Assembly: GCA_054661495.1 (NCBI GenBank)
Contig: BAAFSQ010000418.1
Coordinates: 1-7,069 of the forward strand
From: Zygophlyctis sp. KS116
Lineage: Eukaryota > Fungi > Chytridiomycota
Reading direction: 5' to 3'
Length of the DNA: 7,069 bases
The translations under genes were made by a program, and so were the position numbers. The notes beneath the pieces were generated by a model that saw only the letters and a list, made by a program, of their open reading frames with translations, was not told the DNA's origin and made no database searches. This document shows positions 193 to 7,069 of the stretch, one piece after another (position 1 is the stretch's first letter; every line of letters starts with the position of its first letter).

Positions 193-897
193 TTGGACAT
201 ATTTTTTTTTGATTTCTCACAGGCCGCAAGAAATGGACGCATTGAATTGGTGAAGTGGATGATACAGAGGTATCCTTCCTTTAACACGTACACAATGTCA
301 ATTGCTGCCGCTATTGATCAAGACCAAAAGATAACTGTTGAAGTAATACTTGAAATGCTTGCAAAAGAAAAGCCTGAAATGCGTATGGATGTGTATACCG
401 AATCTTTATCTTCTTTCAGGAGAAATTATGTTGAAATTATTCTAAAAAAGGCTTCAGAGAGTTTTAAAGATTCACAGAGTTTAAGTCAGTTTGGTGAAAG
501 ATTCATTATTTTGTACTCTCAGAAGAAAATGAACCCAACAGTTAGCACGTTGGATTATTTCTTTCATCAAAAAGCTTGGAATCCTAGAACAGTTAGCAGT
601 ATATTAACAGCAATATCAAAAGCAGCAGACAATGTGATGGAACGTATTGGAATGGAATTACTAAATCCTCGTTTCAAGTTTTGTGAAGCTGCAAACGGTG
701 ATCCAATAGAGAAAGCATTAGAGATGGCCAGCCAAAGGAATCAAGGAAAGTATAGAAGAGTGAAACAAGTTTTAGAAAATATTCAAAGAAAGAAATCGAA
801 TGATTCTGCTGATCAACCAATACCTTTCAAAAAACCCAGACTAAGTGCACCAGTATTTCTTGAAGGATTTGGAGCGGCTTTCCATCCTGTAGACTAA
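193..897 (+). CDS. Paralog 1: N-terminally truncated member of the ankyrin-like repeat family (true start uncertain; possibly a pseudogene or spliced)
   Basis: The ORF starts at TTG. Clear homology to the other copies begins at FSQAARNGRIELVKW and continues through NPTVSTLDYFF, WNPRTV and GFGAAFHPVD*. It has no signal peptide or N-terminal half. Confidence 0.6.
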   Translation: MDIFFFDFSQAARNGRIELVKWMIQRYPSFNTYTMSIAAAIDQDQKITVEVILEMLAKEKPEMRMDVYTESLSSFRRNYVEIILKKASESFKDSQSLSQFGERFIILYSQKKMNPTVSTLDYFFHQKAWNPRTVSSILTAISKAADNVMERIGMELLNPRFKFCEAANGDPIEKALEMASQRNQGKYRRVKQVLENIQRKKSNDSADQPIPFKKPRLSAPVFLEGFGAAFHPVD

Positions 898-939
898 TTA
901 TTGGAACTCTAATTATGGCCGCTTTTAATTTCCATTGGC

Positions 940-945
940 AATAAA
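940..945 (+). promoter_or_regulatory. Putative polyadenylation signal of paralog 1
   Basis: AATAAA starting 43 nt after the stop, similar spacing to copies 2 and 4. Confidence 0.4.
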
Positions 946-1008
946 ACCGTTGACCATGTTTAAATCTCGGATCCGCCCACCACTGAACAATGCATCTGCT
1001 TTGAGTCT

Positions 1009-1030
1009 GTAAGAATTGATCCTGATTTAG
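1009..1030 (+). other. Candidate 22-nt 5'-UTR spliceosomal intron of paralog 2
   Basis: GTAAGAATTGATCCTGATTTAG: GTAAG donor, CTGAT branch-like motif and TAG acceptor. Ends 33 nt before the ATG. Confidence 0.5.
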
Positions 1031-1063
1031 GAAAATTTCAATCTAAAAATTCATTAACAAAAA

Positions 1064-2326
1064 ATGCTAATAATTCCCATTGCATTCATTGCATTCATTG
1101 CATGCATCATTGCAGTTGATATTGACCCAGAGGCAGTAAGATCAGTTGCTCATTCATTACTAAAATTGGGAAGAATGTCTGGAAATCAGCAATTATCATC
1201 TAATCTAGCTAAACATCCCACTTATAAAAGCCTTAAAGAAGTATGGTCTTCTAACAGTATTCCTAATCTAGTAGTCAGTCATAAGATCATGCCTTTCTTG
1301 ACGTTTAGAGAAGCGATCAATGCAAAAGTAATGGATGAACGGGAAATCATTAAATATTATTCTTCAAAGGCCAATAAAGATCCCAAGGTACAGGATCAAA
1401 CCTATCAAGATATAATAGCCTATATACTAAGAGATCTGGGGAATCAGGAAATATCAGATCAAACTAGGATTAATTATCTGAAATTATTCTTGGACAATTC
1501 ACAGATCCGTGAAAAATTGAACCTTAGATACAACGATAGTTACAAGTTATTTCAATATGGGAGATTAGAAATCTTAAAATATTTAATGGATCATCGAAAT
1601 TTTTTCGAAGAATTCAAACACTTCAAATCTCTACCCTTCTTGGTAGCTGCTCGGTATGGTCAAACTGAGACGGTCAAATGGATATTAAAGATTGGACCAG
1701 AATTTTATAAACAGTTTATCTTTGATGCCTTGGAAAAAGATCAAGAACAGAATCTTTTGACTATACTTGATATAGCTGAAACGGAAACTAAAAAAATGCG
1801 AATGAACATCTTTAATTTCGCATTGGCATATTCTTTAATTTTCGAGACCAGAAATTATATTGAAATTGTTTTGGAGAGGGTCTCAGATAGCTTTGAAGAT
1901 TCAACTACATTAAGCCAGTGGGGCGAAAGATTTATTAAGATGTACGCTAGAAAGAGATGGAATCCGACAGTCAGTACTTTGGATTTTTTCTTCTCTCAGA
2001 AAGTGTGGAAGCCTAGAACAGTCCGTAGTTTATTAACAGCAATGTCAAAAGCAGCAGACGATGTGATGGAACGTATTGGAATGGAATTATTAAATCCTCG
2101 ATTTAAGTTTCGTGATACCAAAGGATCTGATCCCCTGCAAAAAGCTATTGAAATAGCCAGCTCAAAGAATCAAGCAACATATGGCAGAGTTCTACATGTT
2201 TTACAAAATATTCAAAGAAGTAATTTGAGATATTCTACAGATCAACGTTTAGTTGCTAAAAAACCTAGGCTGAAAGGACCAGTATATATTAGAGGATTTG
2301 GATCGGCTTTCCATCCTGTGGATTAA
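1064..2326 (+). CDS. Paralog 2: predicted secreted protein (420 aa) with degenerate ankyrin-like repeats and a basic C-terminal tail
   Basis: ATG in A-rich context. Hydrophobic N-terminus MLIIPIAFIAFIACIIA|VD. The Gly residues of FQYGRLEILKYL and AARYGQTETVKWIL are 33 aa apart, the ankyrin period. Ends with KKPRLK...GFGSAFHPVD*. Confidence 0.9.
   Translation: MLIIPIAFIAFIACIIAVDIDPEAVRSVAHSLLKLGRMSGNQQLSSNLAKHPTYKSLKEVWSSNSIPNLVVSHKIMPFLTFREAINAKVMDEREIIKYYSSKANKDPKVQDQTYQDIIAYILRDLGNQEISDQTRINYLKLFLDNSQIREKLNLRYNDSYKLFQYGRLEILKYLMDHRNFFEEFKHFKSLPFLVAARYGQTETVKWILKIGPEFYKQFIFDALEKDQEQNLLTILDIAETETKKMRMNIFNFALAYSLIFETRNYIEIVLERVSDSFEDSTTLSQWGERFIKMYARKRWNPTVSTLDFFFSQKVWKPRTVRSLLTAMSKAADDVMERIGMELLNPRFKFRDTKGSDPLQKAIEIASSKNQATYGRVLHVLQNIQRSNLRYSTDQRLVAKKPRLKGPVYIRGFGSAFHPVD
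1078..1103 (+). repeat. 9-nt tandem repeat (CATTGCATT x ~2.9) in the signal peptide of paralog 2
   Basis: CATTGCATT CATTGCATT CATTGCAT encodes IAFIAFIA. It makes this signal peptide 3 aa longer than in copies 3-5. Confidence 0.85.
1089..1372 (+). repeat. Direct repeat A, copy 1 (5' part of paralog 2)
   Basis: Matches 4475-4758 with 4 mismatches in 284 nt by manual alignment. Perfect over 1202-1372. Confidence 0.95.
1883..2100 (+). repeat. Direct repeat B, copy 1 (3' part of paralog 2)
   Basis: Matches 3643-3860 with 4 mismatches in 218 nt by manual alignment. Confidence 0.95.
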
Positions 2327-2370
2327 TTTAATGATAAATAGATCATAATTTGAGGATCTAAATATAAATC

Positions 2371-2409
2371 ATCAATAAATAGTAATCTACGTTCATACCC
2401 CATTTCCTA
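2371..2409 (+). promoter_or_regulatory. Conserved 3' element containing AATAAA (paralog 2)
   Basis: ATCAATAAATAGTAATCTACGTTCATACCCCATTTCCTA, similar to 5763-5800. AATAAA at 2374-2379. Confidence 0.55.
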
Positions 2410-2559
2410 CAGCTTTGCATTGATAATTACAGGCTGCATTATTGATTGGCGTTTGGAATCCGTTTATAATTCGTCCAATCTCAAATTAAAACATTCAGGA
2501 TCAAAATTTTTAGAGATCTGCATGCAGTTCCTTTGTGCCACAAAACAAAAATTTAAAAA

Positions 2560-4002
2560 ATGATGTTAATTCTATTTGCATTTATAGCATGCATCAATGC
2601 AGGCGAACATGACCAAGGAGCATTTAGATCAGCTGTTCAATCAGCCCAACAATGGAGAAGAATGTCCGGAAATCAGCAAAATGCAGTTGCATGGACTAAT
2701 AAATTAGTTTATTCTCAAACTCCTAAGTACAAAAGCATGCAAAAATTATGGGCTTCCAAGAGTCGTCCTTATAATGTTTTTACTAATGAAATCCTACCAT
2801 ATCTGACATTTAATGAAGCGATCAGTGCAAAAGTAATCGATGAAGATAAACTCACTCATTTTTTTGCTTTTAGGGAATTCATTGATCATAATTTAAAGCA
2901 TACATTATCTCAACATATAATTGGATATATAGTAAGGGATTTGGGGAATCAGCACATTTTAGCAGGGAATAGTGCTGATTATTTTGCCACTTTCTTGAAA
3001 ACGGCAAAATCTTCTGCTAGAGTTAGTCTATCAAATGATCAAATAGATCAGATATATAAATTTGGAAAATTACGAAAAGCTATTGATCCAAGAACACTTA
3101 TTAAATATTTTGCCTCAAAGGCTTATAATGATGCAAAGTTACAGGATCAAATCTATCAAGAGATAATGGACTATATCTTTAGAGATCTGGGAGATCAGGA
3201 AATATCGGACGTTATTCGGATCAATAATTTGGAATTATTCTTGAATAATTTACAGCCTTCAAAGCTTGGTTTAATGCTGCCGATTGCTATAATACGAAAG
3301 ATCTTTCAGTTTGGAAAATTGAATCTTTTGAAATATTTGGTGGAACATCAGAATTCGTTTGAGCAATTCAAAAGTATCACATATCTGCCCTTCTCTCTTG
3401 CTGCTGGAAATGGTCATTTGGAAATGGTAAAGTGGATTTTAAAAGATAGCCCTTCCCTTATTATTTATAAATTCTCAATAATAGGATCTATTATTCAAGA
3501 TCAAAAACAGATTCTAGAAACGATAGTTGAGACGGCCTCAAAGCAAAATCGTAAATTTCATATGGATGTTTTGAATGAAGCATTGGGATATTCCTTCTTT
3601 CATAATCGCGGTGATTATGTTTCCTATATTCTTAAAAAGGTTTCAGATAGCTTTGAAGATTCAACTACATTAAGCCAGTGGGGCGAAAGATTTATTAAGA
3701 TGTACGCTAGAAAGAGATGGAATCCGACAGTCAGCACTTTGGATTTTTTCTTCTCTCAGAAAGTGTGGAAGCCAAGAACAGTCCGTAGTATATTAACAGC
3801 AATGTCAAAAGCAGCAGACAATGTGATGGAACGTATTGGAATGGAATTATTAAATCCTCGTTTCAGTTTTCGTGATTCTCCACGAGGTGATCCACTAGAA
3901 AAAGCTATAGAAATTGCTAGCCAAAATAATGACTATCAAAGTGGAAAGTTGATACAAGTTTTACAAGATATTCAGAGAAAGAGATTTCAATTTTCAGGAT
4001 AA
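2560..4002 (+). CDS. Paralog 3: predicted secreted ankyrin-like protein (480 aa) with an internal duplicated module and no C-terminal tail
   Basis: Signal-like MMLILFAFIACINA|GE, RMSGNQ and LPFSLAAGNGHLEMVKWIL. Two copies of the YI(V/F)RDLG(N/D)Q...FGKL module. Ends QRKRFQFSG*. Confidence 0.9.
   Translation: MMLILFAFIACINAGEHDQGAFRSAVQSAQQWRRMSGNQQNAVAWTNKLVYSQTPKYKSMQKLWASKSRPYNVFTNEILPYLTFNEAISAKVIDEDKLTHFFAFREFIDHNLKHTLSQHIIGYIVRDLGNQHILAGNSADYFATFLKTAKSSARVSLSNDQIDQIYKFGKLRKAIDPRTLIKYFASKAYNDAKLQDQIYQEIMDYIFRDLGDQEISDVIRINNLELFLNNLQPSKLGLMLPIAIIRKIFQFGKLNLLKYLVEHQNSFEQFKSITYLPFSLAAGNGHLEMVKWILKDSPSLIIYKFSIIGSIIQDQKQILETIVETASKQNRKFHMDVLNEALGYSFFHNRGDYVSYILKKVSDSFEDSTTLSQWGERFIKMYARKRWNPTVSTLDFFFSQKVWKPRTVRSILTAMSKAADNVMERIGMELLNPRFSFRDSPRGDPLEKAIEIASQNNDYQSGKLIQVLQDIQRKRFQFSG
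3643..3860 (+). repeat. Direct repeat B, copy 2 (3' part of paralog 3)
   Basis: Matches 1883-2100 at an offset of 1760. The segment 3787-3865 also matches 598-676 of paralog 1 with 2 mismatches in 79 nt. Confidence 0.95.
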
Positions 4003-4006
4003 TAAA
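4001..4006 (+). promoter_or_regulatory. Possible polyadenylation signal overlapping the stop of paralog 3
   Basis: TAATAAA: the stop codon (4000-4002) overlaps AATAAA. AT-richness makes a chance match likely. Confidence 0.25.
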
Positions 4007-4394
4007 ATTAAGCAAGTACTTGCAAATGGATGCAAAATCAGTTGAATCTCATAGGAAATTGAATTGCATTTTAGAAAATTAAGAATCTCATAAATACTAT
4101 TTAAGTTATCTAGATTCTTTTATCATATTTTTTCCATTTTTCAAATATCCGATTATCTATTTTGTAGTTAATATTCCCCCGGACAATATCTAGATGTATT
4201 TTTTGGAATCCCTGAGCAGTCCCAATATAAAGGCAGCAATAAAAGTTCATTTTTTATAGAATTTTACAATCACGCCATGTAATATCGTTCGGACAACTCA
4301 TTACCTTTGGACAAGTAATATTTTGAATCCCAGTAGGATGTAAATGTCTATCAATGGATCAATCAAAAATAAAAAATGGAAATCAAACTGTTCG

Positions 4395-4421
4395 GTAAGC
4401 TCCCTGTTCTCAATTTTGCAG
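4395..4421 (+). other. Candidate 27-nt 5'-UTR spliceosomal intron of paralog 4
   Basis: GTAAGCTCCCTGTTCTCAATTTTGCAG: GTAAG donor and TTTTGCAG acceptor. Ends 37 nt before the ATG. Confidence 0.6.
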
Positions 4422-4458
4422 GAACAAATTTGACAACAAAAAATTCAGTATTATAGAG

Positions 4459-5715
4459 ATGATCATATTTCTATTTGCATTCATTGCATGCATCAATGCA
4501 GTTGATATTGACCCAGAGACAGTAAGATCAGTTGCTCATTCATTACTAAAATTGGGAAGAATGTCTGGAAATCAGCAATTATCAGCCAATCTAGCTAAAC
4601 ATCCCACTTATAAAAGCCTTAAAGAAGTATGGTCTTCTAACAGTATTCCTAATCTAGTAGTCAGTCATAAGATCATGCCTTTCTTGACGTTTAGAGAAGC
4701 GATCAATGCAAAAGTAATGGATGAACGGGAAATCATTAAATATTATTCTTCAAAGGCCTATAAAGATTCAAAGTTACAGAAAGAAACTTATCAAGATATT
4801 GCAAACTATATTGTGCGAGATCTGGAGAATAACAAAATATCAGAGCAAAATAGGATCAATAATTTTGAATTATTCTTTCACAACGCTAATATTGTAGAAG
4901 ACGTCGCAATTGTCTACAATAATGTAAAAATGATTTTTGAATATGGGAAATTAGATCTGTTAAAATATTCGGTAGGAAATAAGAATCTTTTTCAATTCCG
5001 AGATTTCAAATATCTACCATTAATGCTAGCTGCTAGAAATGGTCACACAGAAATGGTCAAATGGCTGTTGAAGCAGAATCCTACTTTTGATAATTATAAA
5101 AGTTTACTTTTGGCATCTGTTTACAATGATAAAAAACGAACTTTTGAAGCTATCCTTGAAACAGGGGAAAGTTTTTATAAAAGGAATAATCTGGACATTT
5201 TAAATTTAGCTCTGGCATCTTCTTTCTTTTATAATCTTCAAGAATACGTAGACTTCGTCTTATTTTTTGTTTCAAAAAAATTCAAAGACAAAAATAGTTT
5301 AAGTCGGTTTGGTGAATCTTTTTTAAAGATGTATTCTAAGCCAAATTGGCATCCGACAGTTGAAAATTTAGATAAATTCTTTAAACAAGAAGCCTGGAAT
5401 CCTAGAACCATAAGCAGTATATTAACTGCAATGTCAAAGGCACCGGATGACGTTGTTGAACGTATTGGAAAGGAATTACTGAATCATCGGCTAAAGTTTC
5501 GTGATTCTAAAGGATCTGATCCGCTAAAAACAGCTATAGATATGACCACCTCAAAGAATCAAGCAAAATATGGAAGAGTTAAACAAGTTTTAGAAAATAT
5601 TCAGAAAAAGAGATCTGTAGATGTAAGAGAACAAGCTCCATTGGCTAAAAGACCCAGACTTCAAGAACTAATATATCTTGATGGATTTGGATTGGGCTTC
5701 CATCCAGTGGATTAA
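4459..5715 (+). CDS. Paralog 4: predicted secreted ankyrin-like protein (418 aa) with a bipartite NLS-like tail
   Basis: Signal-like MIIFLFAFIACINA|VD, LPLMLAARNGHTEMVKWLL, KKR-x11-KRPRL and GFGLGFHPVD*. Confidence 0.9.
   Translation: MIIFLFAFIACINAVDIDPETVRSVAHSLLKLGRMSGNQQLSANLAKHPTYKSLKEVWSSNSIPNLVVSHKIMPFLTFREAINAKVMDEREIIKYYSSKAYKDSKLQKETYQDIANYIVRDLENNKISEQNRINNFELFFHNANIVEDVAIVYNNVKMIFEYGKLDLLKYSVGNKNLFQFRDFKYLPLMLAARNGHTEMVKWLLKQNPTFDNYKSLLLASVYNDKKRTFEAILETGESFYKRNNLDILNLALASSFFYNLQEYVDFVLFFVSKKFKDKNSLSRFGESFLKMYSKPNWHPTVENLDKFFKQEAWNPRTISSILTAMSKAPDDVVERIGKELLNHRLKFRDSKGSDPLKTAIDMTTSKNQAKYGRVKQVLENIQKKRSVDVREQAPLAKRPRLQELIYLDGFGLGFHPVD
4475..4758 (+). repeat. Direct repeat A, copy 2 (5' part of paralog 4)
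   Basis: Matches 1089-1372 at an offset of 3386. Confidence 0.95.
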
Positions 5716-5762
5716 TGAATTAAACATTCAGTGGATGAAAATAATATTTTATGGAGATCATT

Positions 5763-5800
5763 ATCAATAAATACTAATCTGCGTTCATGCACATTTCCTA
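5763..5800 (+). promoter_or_regulatory. Conserved 3' element containing AATAAA (paralog 4)
   Basis: ATCAATAAATACTAATCTGCGTTCATGCACATTTCCTA, similar to 2371-2409. AATAAA at 5766-5771. Confidence 0.55.
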
Positions 5801-6020
5801 GATAATTCTTTAGAGAATATTATGAATACAATTTTAGACACGTAATTTACTTTCAGATTTAAACAATCATTTCATAGCACCACGACTGTTGCGGACCATA
5901 CCTTTATTGTCGGACAAACAATGGTAAAATAAGTCAAATGGTAGTCCCGAAGATGCAGATAATTGAAACAATACGAATAATAACAATGATGTGAAATTCA
6001 GAAAGATTATTCACAATTAA

Positions 6021-6047
6021 GTAAAGTCCCTGATCTCAATTTTGCAG
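6021..6047 (+). other. Candidate 27-nt 5'-UTR spliceosomal intron of paralog 5
   Basis: GTAAAGTCCCTGATCTCAATTTTGCAG, with the same length and ends as 4395-4421. Ends 27 nt before the ATG. Confidence 0.6.
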
Positions 6048-6074
6048 GTTCAAATTTGACAAGAATTATTAGAG

Positions 6075-7069
6075 ATGCTAATAATTCCCATTACATTCAT
6101 AGCATGCATCATTGCAGTTGATATTGACCCAGAGACATTAAGATCAGTTGCTCATTCATTCCAACAATCTGGAAGAATGTCCGGAAACCAGCATAATGCT
6201 CCATTGCTGGTCAATCTAGCTAATTCTAAAATTCCTCAGCATAACAGTATCCAACCAGCAGAGAGCTCAGATATTATACTTACGGAGGATATCCTTCAAT
6301 CCTTGACGTTTAGAGAAGCGATCAATGGAAAAGTAATGGAAGAACAGGAAATCATTAAATATTTTGCATCAAAGGACTATGAAAATGCCCAACTTAAGAC
6401 TGAAACATATCAAGCTATAATAGCATATATACTAAGAGATCTGTGGAATCAGGAAATACCTGACCAAAATAGGATTAATAATCTTGAATTATTGTTGGAC
6501 AGCGGTAATCTCGAAGGAGAGGTCACTTTTAGCGATTATAATCTTAATCGGATATTCAAATATGGAAAACTAAAACTTTTGAAATTTTTGATAGGAAAAA
6601 GTAATTTCTATCAGTTCAGAGATGTCAGATATATAACCTTTTTGGAGATAGATGAAAACCATCTCAGCTTGATTGTGAAATGGATTCTAATGCAGAATCC
6701 ATCTTTTGATAATTACAAGTTCTCGATTAGGGATTCAATTATAAGGGATAATATTTCAACTTTAGCTACTATCCTCAAAACTGCTGAAAATCGCCTTCTA
6801 AGCAATCATCTAGATATTTTAAGTTTCGCTTTAGCAAGTGCTTTCTTTTATAATCGTCCAGATTATGTGGATTATGTCTTATCAAAGGTTTCAGAAAGCT
6901 TTCAAAATCCATATAGTTCCGGTTGGTTTAGTGAAAAGTTTTTGAAGATGTATTCAAAGGCAAATTGGAATCCGACTGTTGAAAATTTAGATTATTTCTT
7001 CTCTCAGAAAGTATGGAATCCTAGAACAGTAGGCAGTATATTATTTGCAATGTCAAAAGCTTCAAATAC
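6075..7069 (+). CDS. Paralog 5 (3'-partial, absent from the ORF track): predicted secreted family member, at least 331 aa
   Basis: Manual translation from ATG 6075 is open to the window end: MLIIPITFIACIIAVDIDPETLRSVAHSFQQSGRMSGNQH...LTFREAINGKVM...YILRDLWNQEI...FKYGKLKLLKFL...WNPTVENLDYFFSQKVWNPRTVGSILFAMSKASN. It is collinear with copies 2 and 4. Confidence 0.9.
   Translation, partial: MLIIPITFIACIIAVDIDPETLRSVAHSFQQSGRMSGNQHNAPLLVNLANSKIPQHNSIQPAESSDIILTEDILQSLTFREAINGKVMEEQEIIKYFASKDYENAQLKTETYQAIIAYILRDLWNQEIPDQNRINNLELLLDSGNLEGEVTFSDYNLNRIFKYGKLKLLKFLIGKSNFYQFRDVRYITFLEIDENHLSLIVKWILMQNPSFDNYKFSIRDSIIRDNISTLATILKTAENRLLSNHLDILSFALASAFFYNRPDYVDYVLSKVSESFQNPYSSGWFSEKFLKMYSKANWNPTVENLDYFFSQKVWNPRTVGSILFAMSKASN

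Follow-up and report, generated by a model that had tools for sequence, protein, structure and literature searches.

What would a protein that appears to be routed to secretion do with a tail resembling a nuclear localization signal (NLS)? This question is raised by contig BAAFSQ010000418.1 (C418), which carries an array of five genes for ankyrin-like proteins. The window, that is, the whole stretch of DNA analysed, is the entire 7-kb contig (7,069 nucleotides), one of 1175 contigs in a 12.7 Mb metagenome-assembled genome. Metagenome look-ups link this assembly with freshwater samples, and parts of the array occur in 15 studies. The five genes, c1 to c5, are paralogs, all in the same orientation and intronless, and the GC content across the window is even (approximately 0.30–0.37). 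We regard it as an even call that they belong to a lineage-restricted, fast-turnover family of secreted ankyrin-repeat scaffolds of an uncultured freshwater zoosporic fungus, most likely host-directed effectors that would act in the host nucleus. That the proteins are secreted, delivered into a host, and imported into its nucleus, and that there is a host at all, we infer.

In the proposed mechanism, a signal peptide of 14–17 residues would lead the protein into the endoplasmic reticulum (ER) and be cleaved off after (I/N/S)-A. The mature protein of about 45 kDa, nearly cysteine-free and with few glycosylation sequons, would exit the fungus unmodified and enter the cell on or in which the fungus lives. 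There, the C-terminal (K/R)(K/R)-X11-K(K/R)PR(L/V) would engage importin-alpha, and the ankyrin solenoid would bind a host protein in the nucleus. A secretion signal and a nuclear signal in one protein would fit such delivery into another cell.

Organization of the array

The five paralogs were laid out as follows.

196..897, + strand: c1, a 5ʹ-truncated paralog comprising the C-terminal half and matching family profile positions 182–418
1064..2326, + strand: c2, a complete paralog of 420 amino acids (aa)
2560..4002, + strand: c3, a 480-aa paralog in which the usual tail is gone and the C-terminal end is RKRFQFSG
4003..4080, + strand: degraded remnant of the c3 tail-coding sequence, where the profile match runs on across 5 stop codons
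4459..5715, + strand: c4, a complete paralog of 418 aa and the copy used for the structure model
6075..7069, + strand: c5, with signal peptide, leader, and repeats; 331 aa are seen, the frame is open at the contig end, and the tail lies beyond it

The sequence-only reading that preceded this analysis had described five co-oriented paralogs, and the mutual similarities (pairwise E 1e-73 to 1e-158, far above chance) bear this out. It had also proposed that c2 and c4 each combine a signal peptide, ankyrin-like repeats, and a basic tail; all three were recovered in both copies (N-terminal site, Pfam Ank_2, which is below its cut-off in c2, and KKPRL or KR-X11-KRPRL), and the overall architecture of signal-peptide-like N-terminus, ankyrin-like solenoid, and NLS-like tail is supported by hydropathy, the structure model, and the tail consensus. 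As a description of all five copies, the architecture stands for c2 and c4 and fails for c1, which has no signal peptide, and for c3, which has no basic tail; the tail of c5 falls past the contig end. The first copy, c1, has no ATG start, and bases 1–195 upstream of it are unrelated to the family, while its tail is intact (KK-X11-KKPRL ... GFGAAFHPVD). In c3, about 85 aa of the N-terminal repeat module are duplicated internally.

The N-terminus resembles a cleavable signal peptide

Three N-terminal features were located in the complete copies.

1064..1114, + strand: predicted signal peptide of c2, MLIIPIAFIAFIACIIA followed by VD; uncharged, with mean Kyte-Doolittle hydropathy 3.05
4459..4500, + strand: predicted signal peptide of c4, MIIFLFAFIACINA followed by VD
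1172..1189, + strand: leader motif RMSGNQ of c2, at a fixed position about 20 aa past the predicted cleavage site

Of the core-family genes, 11 are complete at the N-terminus, and in all 11 the open frame's first ATG opens a stretch of 13–18 uncharged residues with a mean hydropathy of 1.9–3.1, the exception to the uncharged run being C126b, with Lys at position 3. The pattern is M-(L/I)-I-I...A-F-I-(A/S)-C-I-(N/S/I)-A, then V-D or A-N, and c2 and c4 have a cleavage-type site of the form (I)-(N/I)-A; each complete N-terminus closes with a small-x-small site. No later membrane-spanning segment was found, the best later 19-residue window having a hydropathy of at most 1.3. Judged from these sequence properties, the N-terminus fits a cleavable Sec-type signal peptide, with ER translocation and cleavage predicted, and its hydrophobic region is too short for a predicted membrane anchor. 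An acidic flank (VDIDPE) lies downstream of the predicted cleavage site in most copies, and the C-terminal part is therefore predicted to cross the ER membrane. The distant relatives P0039, P0097, P0118, and P0138 have N-termini that differ in sequence and are equally signal-peptide-like, so that selection appears to have kept the property and not just the sequence; P0044 starts within the equivalent segment.

Across the family, the leader consensus R[MVF][SA][GAP]N[QH] lies at a fixed distance of 19–20 residues beyond the predicted cleavage site. Most of residues 1–68, comprising leader and linker, had a predicted local distance difference test score (pLDDT) below 50 in the c4 model and are predicted to be disordered.

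We considered whether such N-termini are a general artefact of ankyrin proteins in this genome and rejected this after inspecting 25 canonical ones. None of the 25 has the family-type signal-peptide pattern, so the signal peptide is special to this family; three N-termini reach the hydropathy cut-off, two of them of the F-box-like LPxEIL type, and most are plainly not hydrophobic.

The genome holds a large expansion of canonical ankyrin proteins, with at least 148 Ank_2 matches among 374 candidates in 12.7 Mb, many of them on short contigs (for example, L033:1057-2784, L042:1351-2475, L049:323-1423, and L053:622-1461). Many of these proteins start with an F-box-like LPxEIL..I..L, scoring 14–15 bits against the Pfam F-box threshold of 20.5.

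The C-terminal tail carries an NLS-like signal and a family-specific motif

The tail features of the two complete copies were as follows.

2258..2323, + strand: tail of c2, with the monopartite NLS-like KKPRLK and then GFGSAFHPVD
5605..5661, + strand: bipartite NLS-like signal of c4, consisting of KKR, an 11-residue variable spacer, and KRPRL
5683..5712, + strand: C-terminal motif GFGLGFHPVD of c4

The NLS consensus, taken from PMC3946659 and reportedly also given by Kosugi 2009, is K-K/R-x-K/R for the monopartite form and KR-X10-12-K(K/R)x(K/R) for the bipartite form. Among the 13 tails examined, 11 contain K(K/R)x(K/R), and seven have a KR or KK pair, a spacer, and K(K/R)PR(L/V/I); six of these spacers have 11 residues, and that of C126c has nine, just under the consensus of 10–12. 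The sequences AKRPRL and PKRLKL are similar to AKRVKL, the major-site peptide of c-Myc (PMC3946659). By consensus matching, most tails fit a classical importin-alpha NLS, and nuclear import is predicted. The segment after the last helix had a pLDDT of 41–54 in the c4 model and is probably disordered. The spacer drifts in sequence yet holds its length, and with a ratio of nonsynonymous to synonymous polymorphism (pN/pS) of 1.26 it is the sole window above 1. A bipartite importin-alpha signal would be expected to have such a fixed-length, drifting spacer, its upstream pair occupying the minor site and its downstream cluster the major one. A typical bipartite linker has 10–14 residues (PMC3946659).

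The tail ends in (D/E)GFGxxFHPV(D/L); the C326b and C31 copies have the variant FGMPFHPVD, and the C6 cousin has FGMPLYEI, a fainter resemblance. A back-translated pattern search of the genome found strict GFGxxFHP(V/L) in this family only. The looser FGxxFHP had eight further matches, seven of which are chance matches: six are short frames or have the motif away from the C-terminus, and one lies inside a metabolic enzyme, which we take to be a GMP-synthase-type GATase. We therefore rejected the tail as a module shared with other secreted families, the strict motif being family-only and the loose matches mostly chance. The eighth match (L065; C126:15345-15364, + strand) is a 109-codon open frame ending in ..KKTIFGIPFHPTAYERLKTF, about 10 kb from the C126 cluster; its end resembles the FGMPFHPVD variant, and it could represent a remnant or a terminal exon. 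A class-3 minor-site NLS, KRx(W/F/Y)xxAF, was also rejected, as c2 alone resembles it (IRGFGSAF) and the other copies have D/E in place of the basic residues.

The central domain is an ankyrin-like solenoid

The c4 protein was modelled with AlphaFold2 from a 15-sequence family alignment, giving a mean pLDDT of 79 and a predicted template modelling score (pTM) of 0.70. Two features were assigned.

4669..5628, + strand: helical-repeat solenoid of c4 (aa 71–390), with about nine helix-turn-helix repeats, all-helical, pLDDT mostly above 85
4942..5172, + strand: canonical ankyrin repeats of c4 (aa 162–238), with Pfam Ank_2 (PF12796) at 36.6 bits against a gathering score of 27.3

When searched against the PDB with Foldseek, the model gave weak E-values, and the high-probability rows were ankyrin proteins (E 0.03 or weaker). 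An exhaustive VIA-align comparison gave nearly all ankyrin proteins among the top 20. The best match was vaccinia K1 (3kea), with a root-mean-square deviation of 6.4 Å for 261 residues over positions 76–383 and Z 10.7, a value in the range that unrelated helical repeats can attain, followed by NOMPC, ankyrin-1, DARPins, EHMT1, ASB7, RNase L, and a Legionella ankyrin protein; searches of ESM Atlas and the viral library BFVD likewise gave ankyrin proteins. In the model, residues 70–390 thus form a confident helical solenoid whose closest structures are almost all ankyrin proteins.

By sequence, Ank, Ank_3, and Ank_4 also exceed their Pfam cut-offs in c4, and c1–c3 fall below the ankyrin cut-offs (13–20 bits; Ank_2 at 19.6 bits in c2). 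The central repeats are genuine ankyrin repeats, as cross-matches of the family profile to canonical ankyrin proteins at positions 161–211 confirm. The helices of repeats 5–7 have 13–15 residues, above the canonical length. On the model, a degenerate ankyrin-like solenoid, canonical by sequence in the central repeats only, is a fair description of the domain.

PF03158 gave a weak Pfam echo (E 0.024), and the protein language-model look-alikes Shigella OspC and MGF360 of African swine fever virus (ASFV) share too few features to count as evidence. Mimicry of an F-box or SCF adaptor, suggested by aa 60–95 (IPxL..I.PFLTFREAIN) and by the F-box-like plus ankyrin proteins of the genome, was rejected as unsupported: Pfam scans found no F-box at E≤1 for c1–c4 or at E≤5 for the distant relatives, and hhalign against the N-termini of those proteins gave E 0.28 and 0.095 with the wrong regions aligned.

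The composition of the proteins was also distinctive. Only 4 of the 5422 residues in the mature parts are cysteine (0.07%), versus 1.2% in 35 other long open reading frames of the genome, and N-x-S/T sequons occur at 0.18 per 100 residues versus 0.59 in the same 35 frames, binomial P-values for both differences overstating their significance because the paralogs are not independent. This composition fits a protein that would cross the ER and Golgi and yet work in a reducing compartment, without disulfides or glycans.

The family in the genome and beyond

Protein and profile searches found about 13 family loci on five contigs of the genome. C126 carries three copies, one with an in-frame internal deletion and one with a diverged tail; C326 carries two copies, with an N-terminal fragment where the contig ends and a remnant full of stops; C31 has a single copy at the contig start; C818 has two copies, each cut by a contig end; and C6 holds one distant cousin with 25–29% identity. 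Because several copies end at contig ends, the family arrays probably break the assembly. On the longer contigs (28–98 kb), the family adjoins ordinary eukaryotic genes (STI1/HOP-like, Suc_Fer-like, and DUF92), which argues against binning contamination.

Two open, in-frame short forms were seen. In C126b (L023:6689-7576), the signal peptide and leader are joined to the C-terminal half, with family positions ~59–190 deleted; in C818a (L008:1-882), ..YSQKK is joined to LDGFEMGFYLVK, with about 110 residues deleted. Either could be a functional short isoform or a decaying gene. In one subclade, about 75 nt before the start codon are conserved, with in-frame read-through (..GCGSxKTAA..KITSNS-M), as seen at L023 (before 8936), L020 (before 6111), L016 (before 1543), and L017 (before 354). 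An ATG occurs within this stretch in the C326 copy only, and the stretch is probably a 5ʹ leader.

Outside the genome, two relatives turned up among 5.8 billion proteins screened with a word index. Against 1.84 billion cluster representatives, the family profile matched, for the core family, one full-length close relative and about 12 fragments, together with five distant single-stretch relatives (P0039, P0044, P0097, P0118, and P0138) and hundreds of canonical multi-ankyrin proteins that match at profile positions 161–211 only. All relatives with traced contigs (P0001, P0002, P0039, P0097, and P0138) come from a freshwater metagenome or public run assembly, with no named genome among the five sources. 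The earlier statement that the family was not recognised thus still applies: beyond ankyrin, Pfam gave nothing, and the only relatives among the 1.84 billion representatives are from freshwater metagenomes. As far as searched, the leader motif and the C-terminal motif appear to be new.

A contig from the European Nucleotide Archive (ENA) holds an ortholog of C326a, with nonsynonymous and synonymous divergence (dN and dS) of 0.06 and 0.20, and the same neighbour gene of 514 aa. This gene (L020:3071-4612 on C326; L016:3010-4551 on the ENA contig) lies beside a family member on both contigs, which makes the neighbourhood a conserved one; Pfam finds nothing in the gene product, which also lacks a signal peptide.

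Purifying selection and rapid turnover

The whole-gene dN/dS between paralogs was 0.28–0.58, which shows real but relaxed purifying selection on genes that are functional but fast-evolving. The most conserved block spans residues 313–360, and the leader and linker (pN/pS 0.65–0.89) are the fastest-evolving part after the tail spacer. Truncated, internally deleted, and tail-less copies are present, a picture of birth-and-death turnover. Between c2 and c4, 1089–1388 and 4475–4774 at the 5ʹ end are 97% identical, and between c2 and c3, 300 nt in the 3ʹ part (1854–2153 and 3614–3913) are 89% identical, with about 60–75% identity in the remainder of these genes; this mosaic identity suggests segmental gene conversion between copies. 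Other lake populations carry variants at 90–99% identity. In another lake metagenome, a 769-nt contig (run X5, contig 13) joins the middle of c3 (3277–3820) directly to the 3ʹ part of c2 (2061–2285) and may be a recombinant, or else a further paralog present in that population.

Host-directed effectors and other explanations

Several loci for chitin synthases of the fungal type and a gene for a flagellar radial-spoke protein are present in the genome, which fits a zoosporic (flagellated) fungus as the source. The low cysteine and sequon content, the birth-and-death turnover, and the relaxed purifying selection would fit secretory-pathway proteins that act in the cytosol or nucleus. Several points weigh against effectors acting in a host nucleus. 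The signal-peptide and NLS calls come from heuristic consensus rules, and the Z score of the K1 match is one that helical repeats of other origin also reach. A regular-expression scan for host-translocation motifs found no RxLR-dEER, CRN LxLFLAK, or PEXEL/TEXEL in the core family, with RRLSD in the distant relative P0097 only. Two otherwise intact copies, c3 and C126a, have no basic signal, and since no window except the tail spacer exceeds a pN/pS of 1, there is no clear sign of an arms race. The lifestyle markers seen point to a zoosporic fungus only, parasitism being a further step; the TLC nucleotide transporter, a marker of intracellular parasitism in rozellids and microsporidia, had no match here or in any control genome and is uninformative. 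In a lake metatranscriptome, three short contigs perfectly match inside c2 and c4, which is weak evidence that the family is transcribed because such libraries can carry DNA.

A more far-reaching version, which we put forward tentatively and consider doubtful, is that this would be the first nuclear-targeted effector family of a zoosporic fungus, with KR-X11-K(K/R)PRL plus GFGxxFHPV as a new composite host-targeting signal and the leader R[MV]S[GA]N[QH], positioned like PEXEL or RxLR, as a new processing or uptake motif.

The same features might also belong to a secreted or surface ankyrin scaffold serving the fungus itself, at the wall, at the zoospore surface, or in adhesion, in which case the basic tail would be a patch for polyanions, wall, or membrane instead of an NLS. 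The signal-peptide-like N-terminus is the best-supported feature and would suit such a role, as would the lack of a known host or of an uptake motif in the core-family scan; some intact copies do without the basic tail, and short basic clusters are common by chance. However, ankyrin repeats are overwhelmingly intracellular, the avoidance of cysteine and sequons is unlike typical fungal wall and extracellular proteins, and the exact bipartite spacing is kept while the spacer sequence drifts, so we judge this explanation rather unlikely. Dual targeting within the fungus is less probable again: the full-length form would go to the ER, and a form starting at the internal Met of RMSGNQ would reach the fungus's own nucleus through the NLS, PTHrP being a reported case of such dual targeting. 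A Met is present at fixed residue 34–37 in 8 of the 15 aligned family sequences, and the NLS-like tail is conserved, but the subclade of C126c, C326a, C326b, and the ENA and Joint Genome Institute (JGI) sequences has V or F at this place, and C818b has L, with signal peptide and tail kept; moreover, a young, variable, lineage-restricted family fits a housekeeping nuclear role poorly.

The conserved end of the tail could instead be the active product, if a Golgi protease of the Kex2 type cut at the KR or KK of the tail and freed a C-terminal peptide of about 18 residues (..PVYLDGFGxxFHPVD). Dibasic sites do lie in a disordered linker of what would be a secretory-pathway protein, and the final 10 residues are the most distinctive conserved, family-specific motif. 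Yet a conserved, folded solenoid of 320 residues (dN/dS 0.3–0.4) is an unlikely peptide carrier, half of the sites are KK-P, a poor Kex2 substrate, and each protein contains a single such peptide, in which it differs from the repeat-type precursors that are known; we give this precursor only a slim chance. We give least credence of all to a relic of a virus or mobile element, a binned contaminant, or a decaying, functionless family. Tandem arrays of degenerate ankyrin multigene families are typical of large DNA viruses, vaccinia K1 is the best structural match, several copies are truncated, and most lie on short contigs. Against this stand the ordinary eukaryotic neighbours on the 28–98 kb contigs, a dN/dS well under 1, the copy orthologous to that on the ENA metagenome contig with its shared syntenic neighbour gene (dN 0.06, dS 0.20), and the profile and BFVD searches, in which no specific viral relative was found.

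Significance and comparison with known systems

Chytrid-like parasites of plankton help to control algal blooms and carbon flow in lakes. From the literature searched, and mainly in our own assessment, we know of no molecular effectors described for such parasites in freshwater. The family is clearly delimited and combines a predicted export signal with a scaffold suited to protein binding and a tail resembling a signal for nuclear import, so it offers concrete candidates for localization and interaction work. It also provides a sequence marker with which to follow these fungi in metagenomes and metatranscriptomes from lakes. Should the source prove to be free-living, the family would stand out as an unusual example of ankyrin proteins that are secreted.

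Expanded families of secreted ankyrin effector candidates with nuclear signals are an already known type of system. Among the secreted proteins of the plasmodiophorids Plasmodiophora and Spongospora, the largest cluster consists of ankyrin proteins with a signal peptide, one of which binds host MPK3 (PMC12503489). Like the candidates of Plasmodiophora brassicae (PbANK1) and Spongospora subterranea, the present family joins a predicted signal peptide to an ankyrin-like solenoid in a lineage-specific expansion, has a conserved hydrophobic repeat core with polymorphic surface positions, and is proposed to bind host proteins in the host cell (PMC12503489). Sequence kinship does not extend beyond the ankyrin repeat: the plasmodiophorid proteins have canonical repeats of 32–33 residues, some with SKP1 or BTB domains, and a conserved C-terminal tail of NLS plus GFGxxFHPV is not reported in the parts of PMC12503489 that were read. 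Host, infection-time expression, and one host target are known for the plasmodiophorid proteins (PMC12503489), whereas the present family is known from sequence.

The translocated ankyrin effectors of bacteria resemble the present family in that an ankyrin scaffold passes from a microbe into a eukaryotic cell, a passage that is proposed for the present family. They include AnkA of Anaplasma, Ank200 of Ehrlichia, and the Ank proteins of Orientia and Legionella, some of which are nucleus-targeted. Their export depends on type IV or type I secretion signals and not on an ER signal peptide, and F-box or PRANC partner domains are common among them. The sequences are unrelated, and the present family was F-box-negative in the Pfam and hhalign tests.

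The ankyrin families of DNA viruses (vaccinia K1, ASFV MGF360/530, and giant-virus ANK proteins) share with the array degenerate repeats in tandem, fast-turnover arrays, with roles in host interaction on the viral side; they also supply the best structural match (Z 10.7) and weak echoes from PF03158 and MGF 360. Viral ankyrin proteins, in contrast, lack a signal peptide and work inside the cell that produces them, and no specific homology to them was found (Foldseek E 5e-3 or weaker).

SP7 of Rhizophagus and the crinkler (CRN) proteins, including those of the chytrid Batrachochytrium, are effectors that join a signal peptide with an NLS. CRN proteins are cited in PMC4695088. Although these effectors have no ankyrin solenoid, and the N-terminal LxLFLAK/HVLVxxP module of the CRN proteins is absent from the present family, they and the present family have in common an ER signal peptide and an NLS (predicted in the latter) in one protein, a combination that is read as delivery to the host nucleus.

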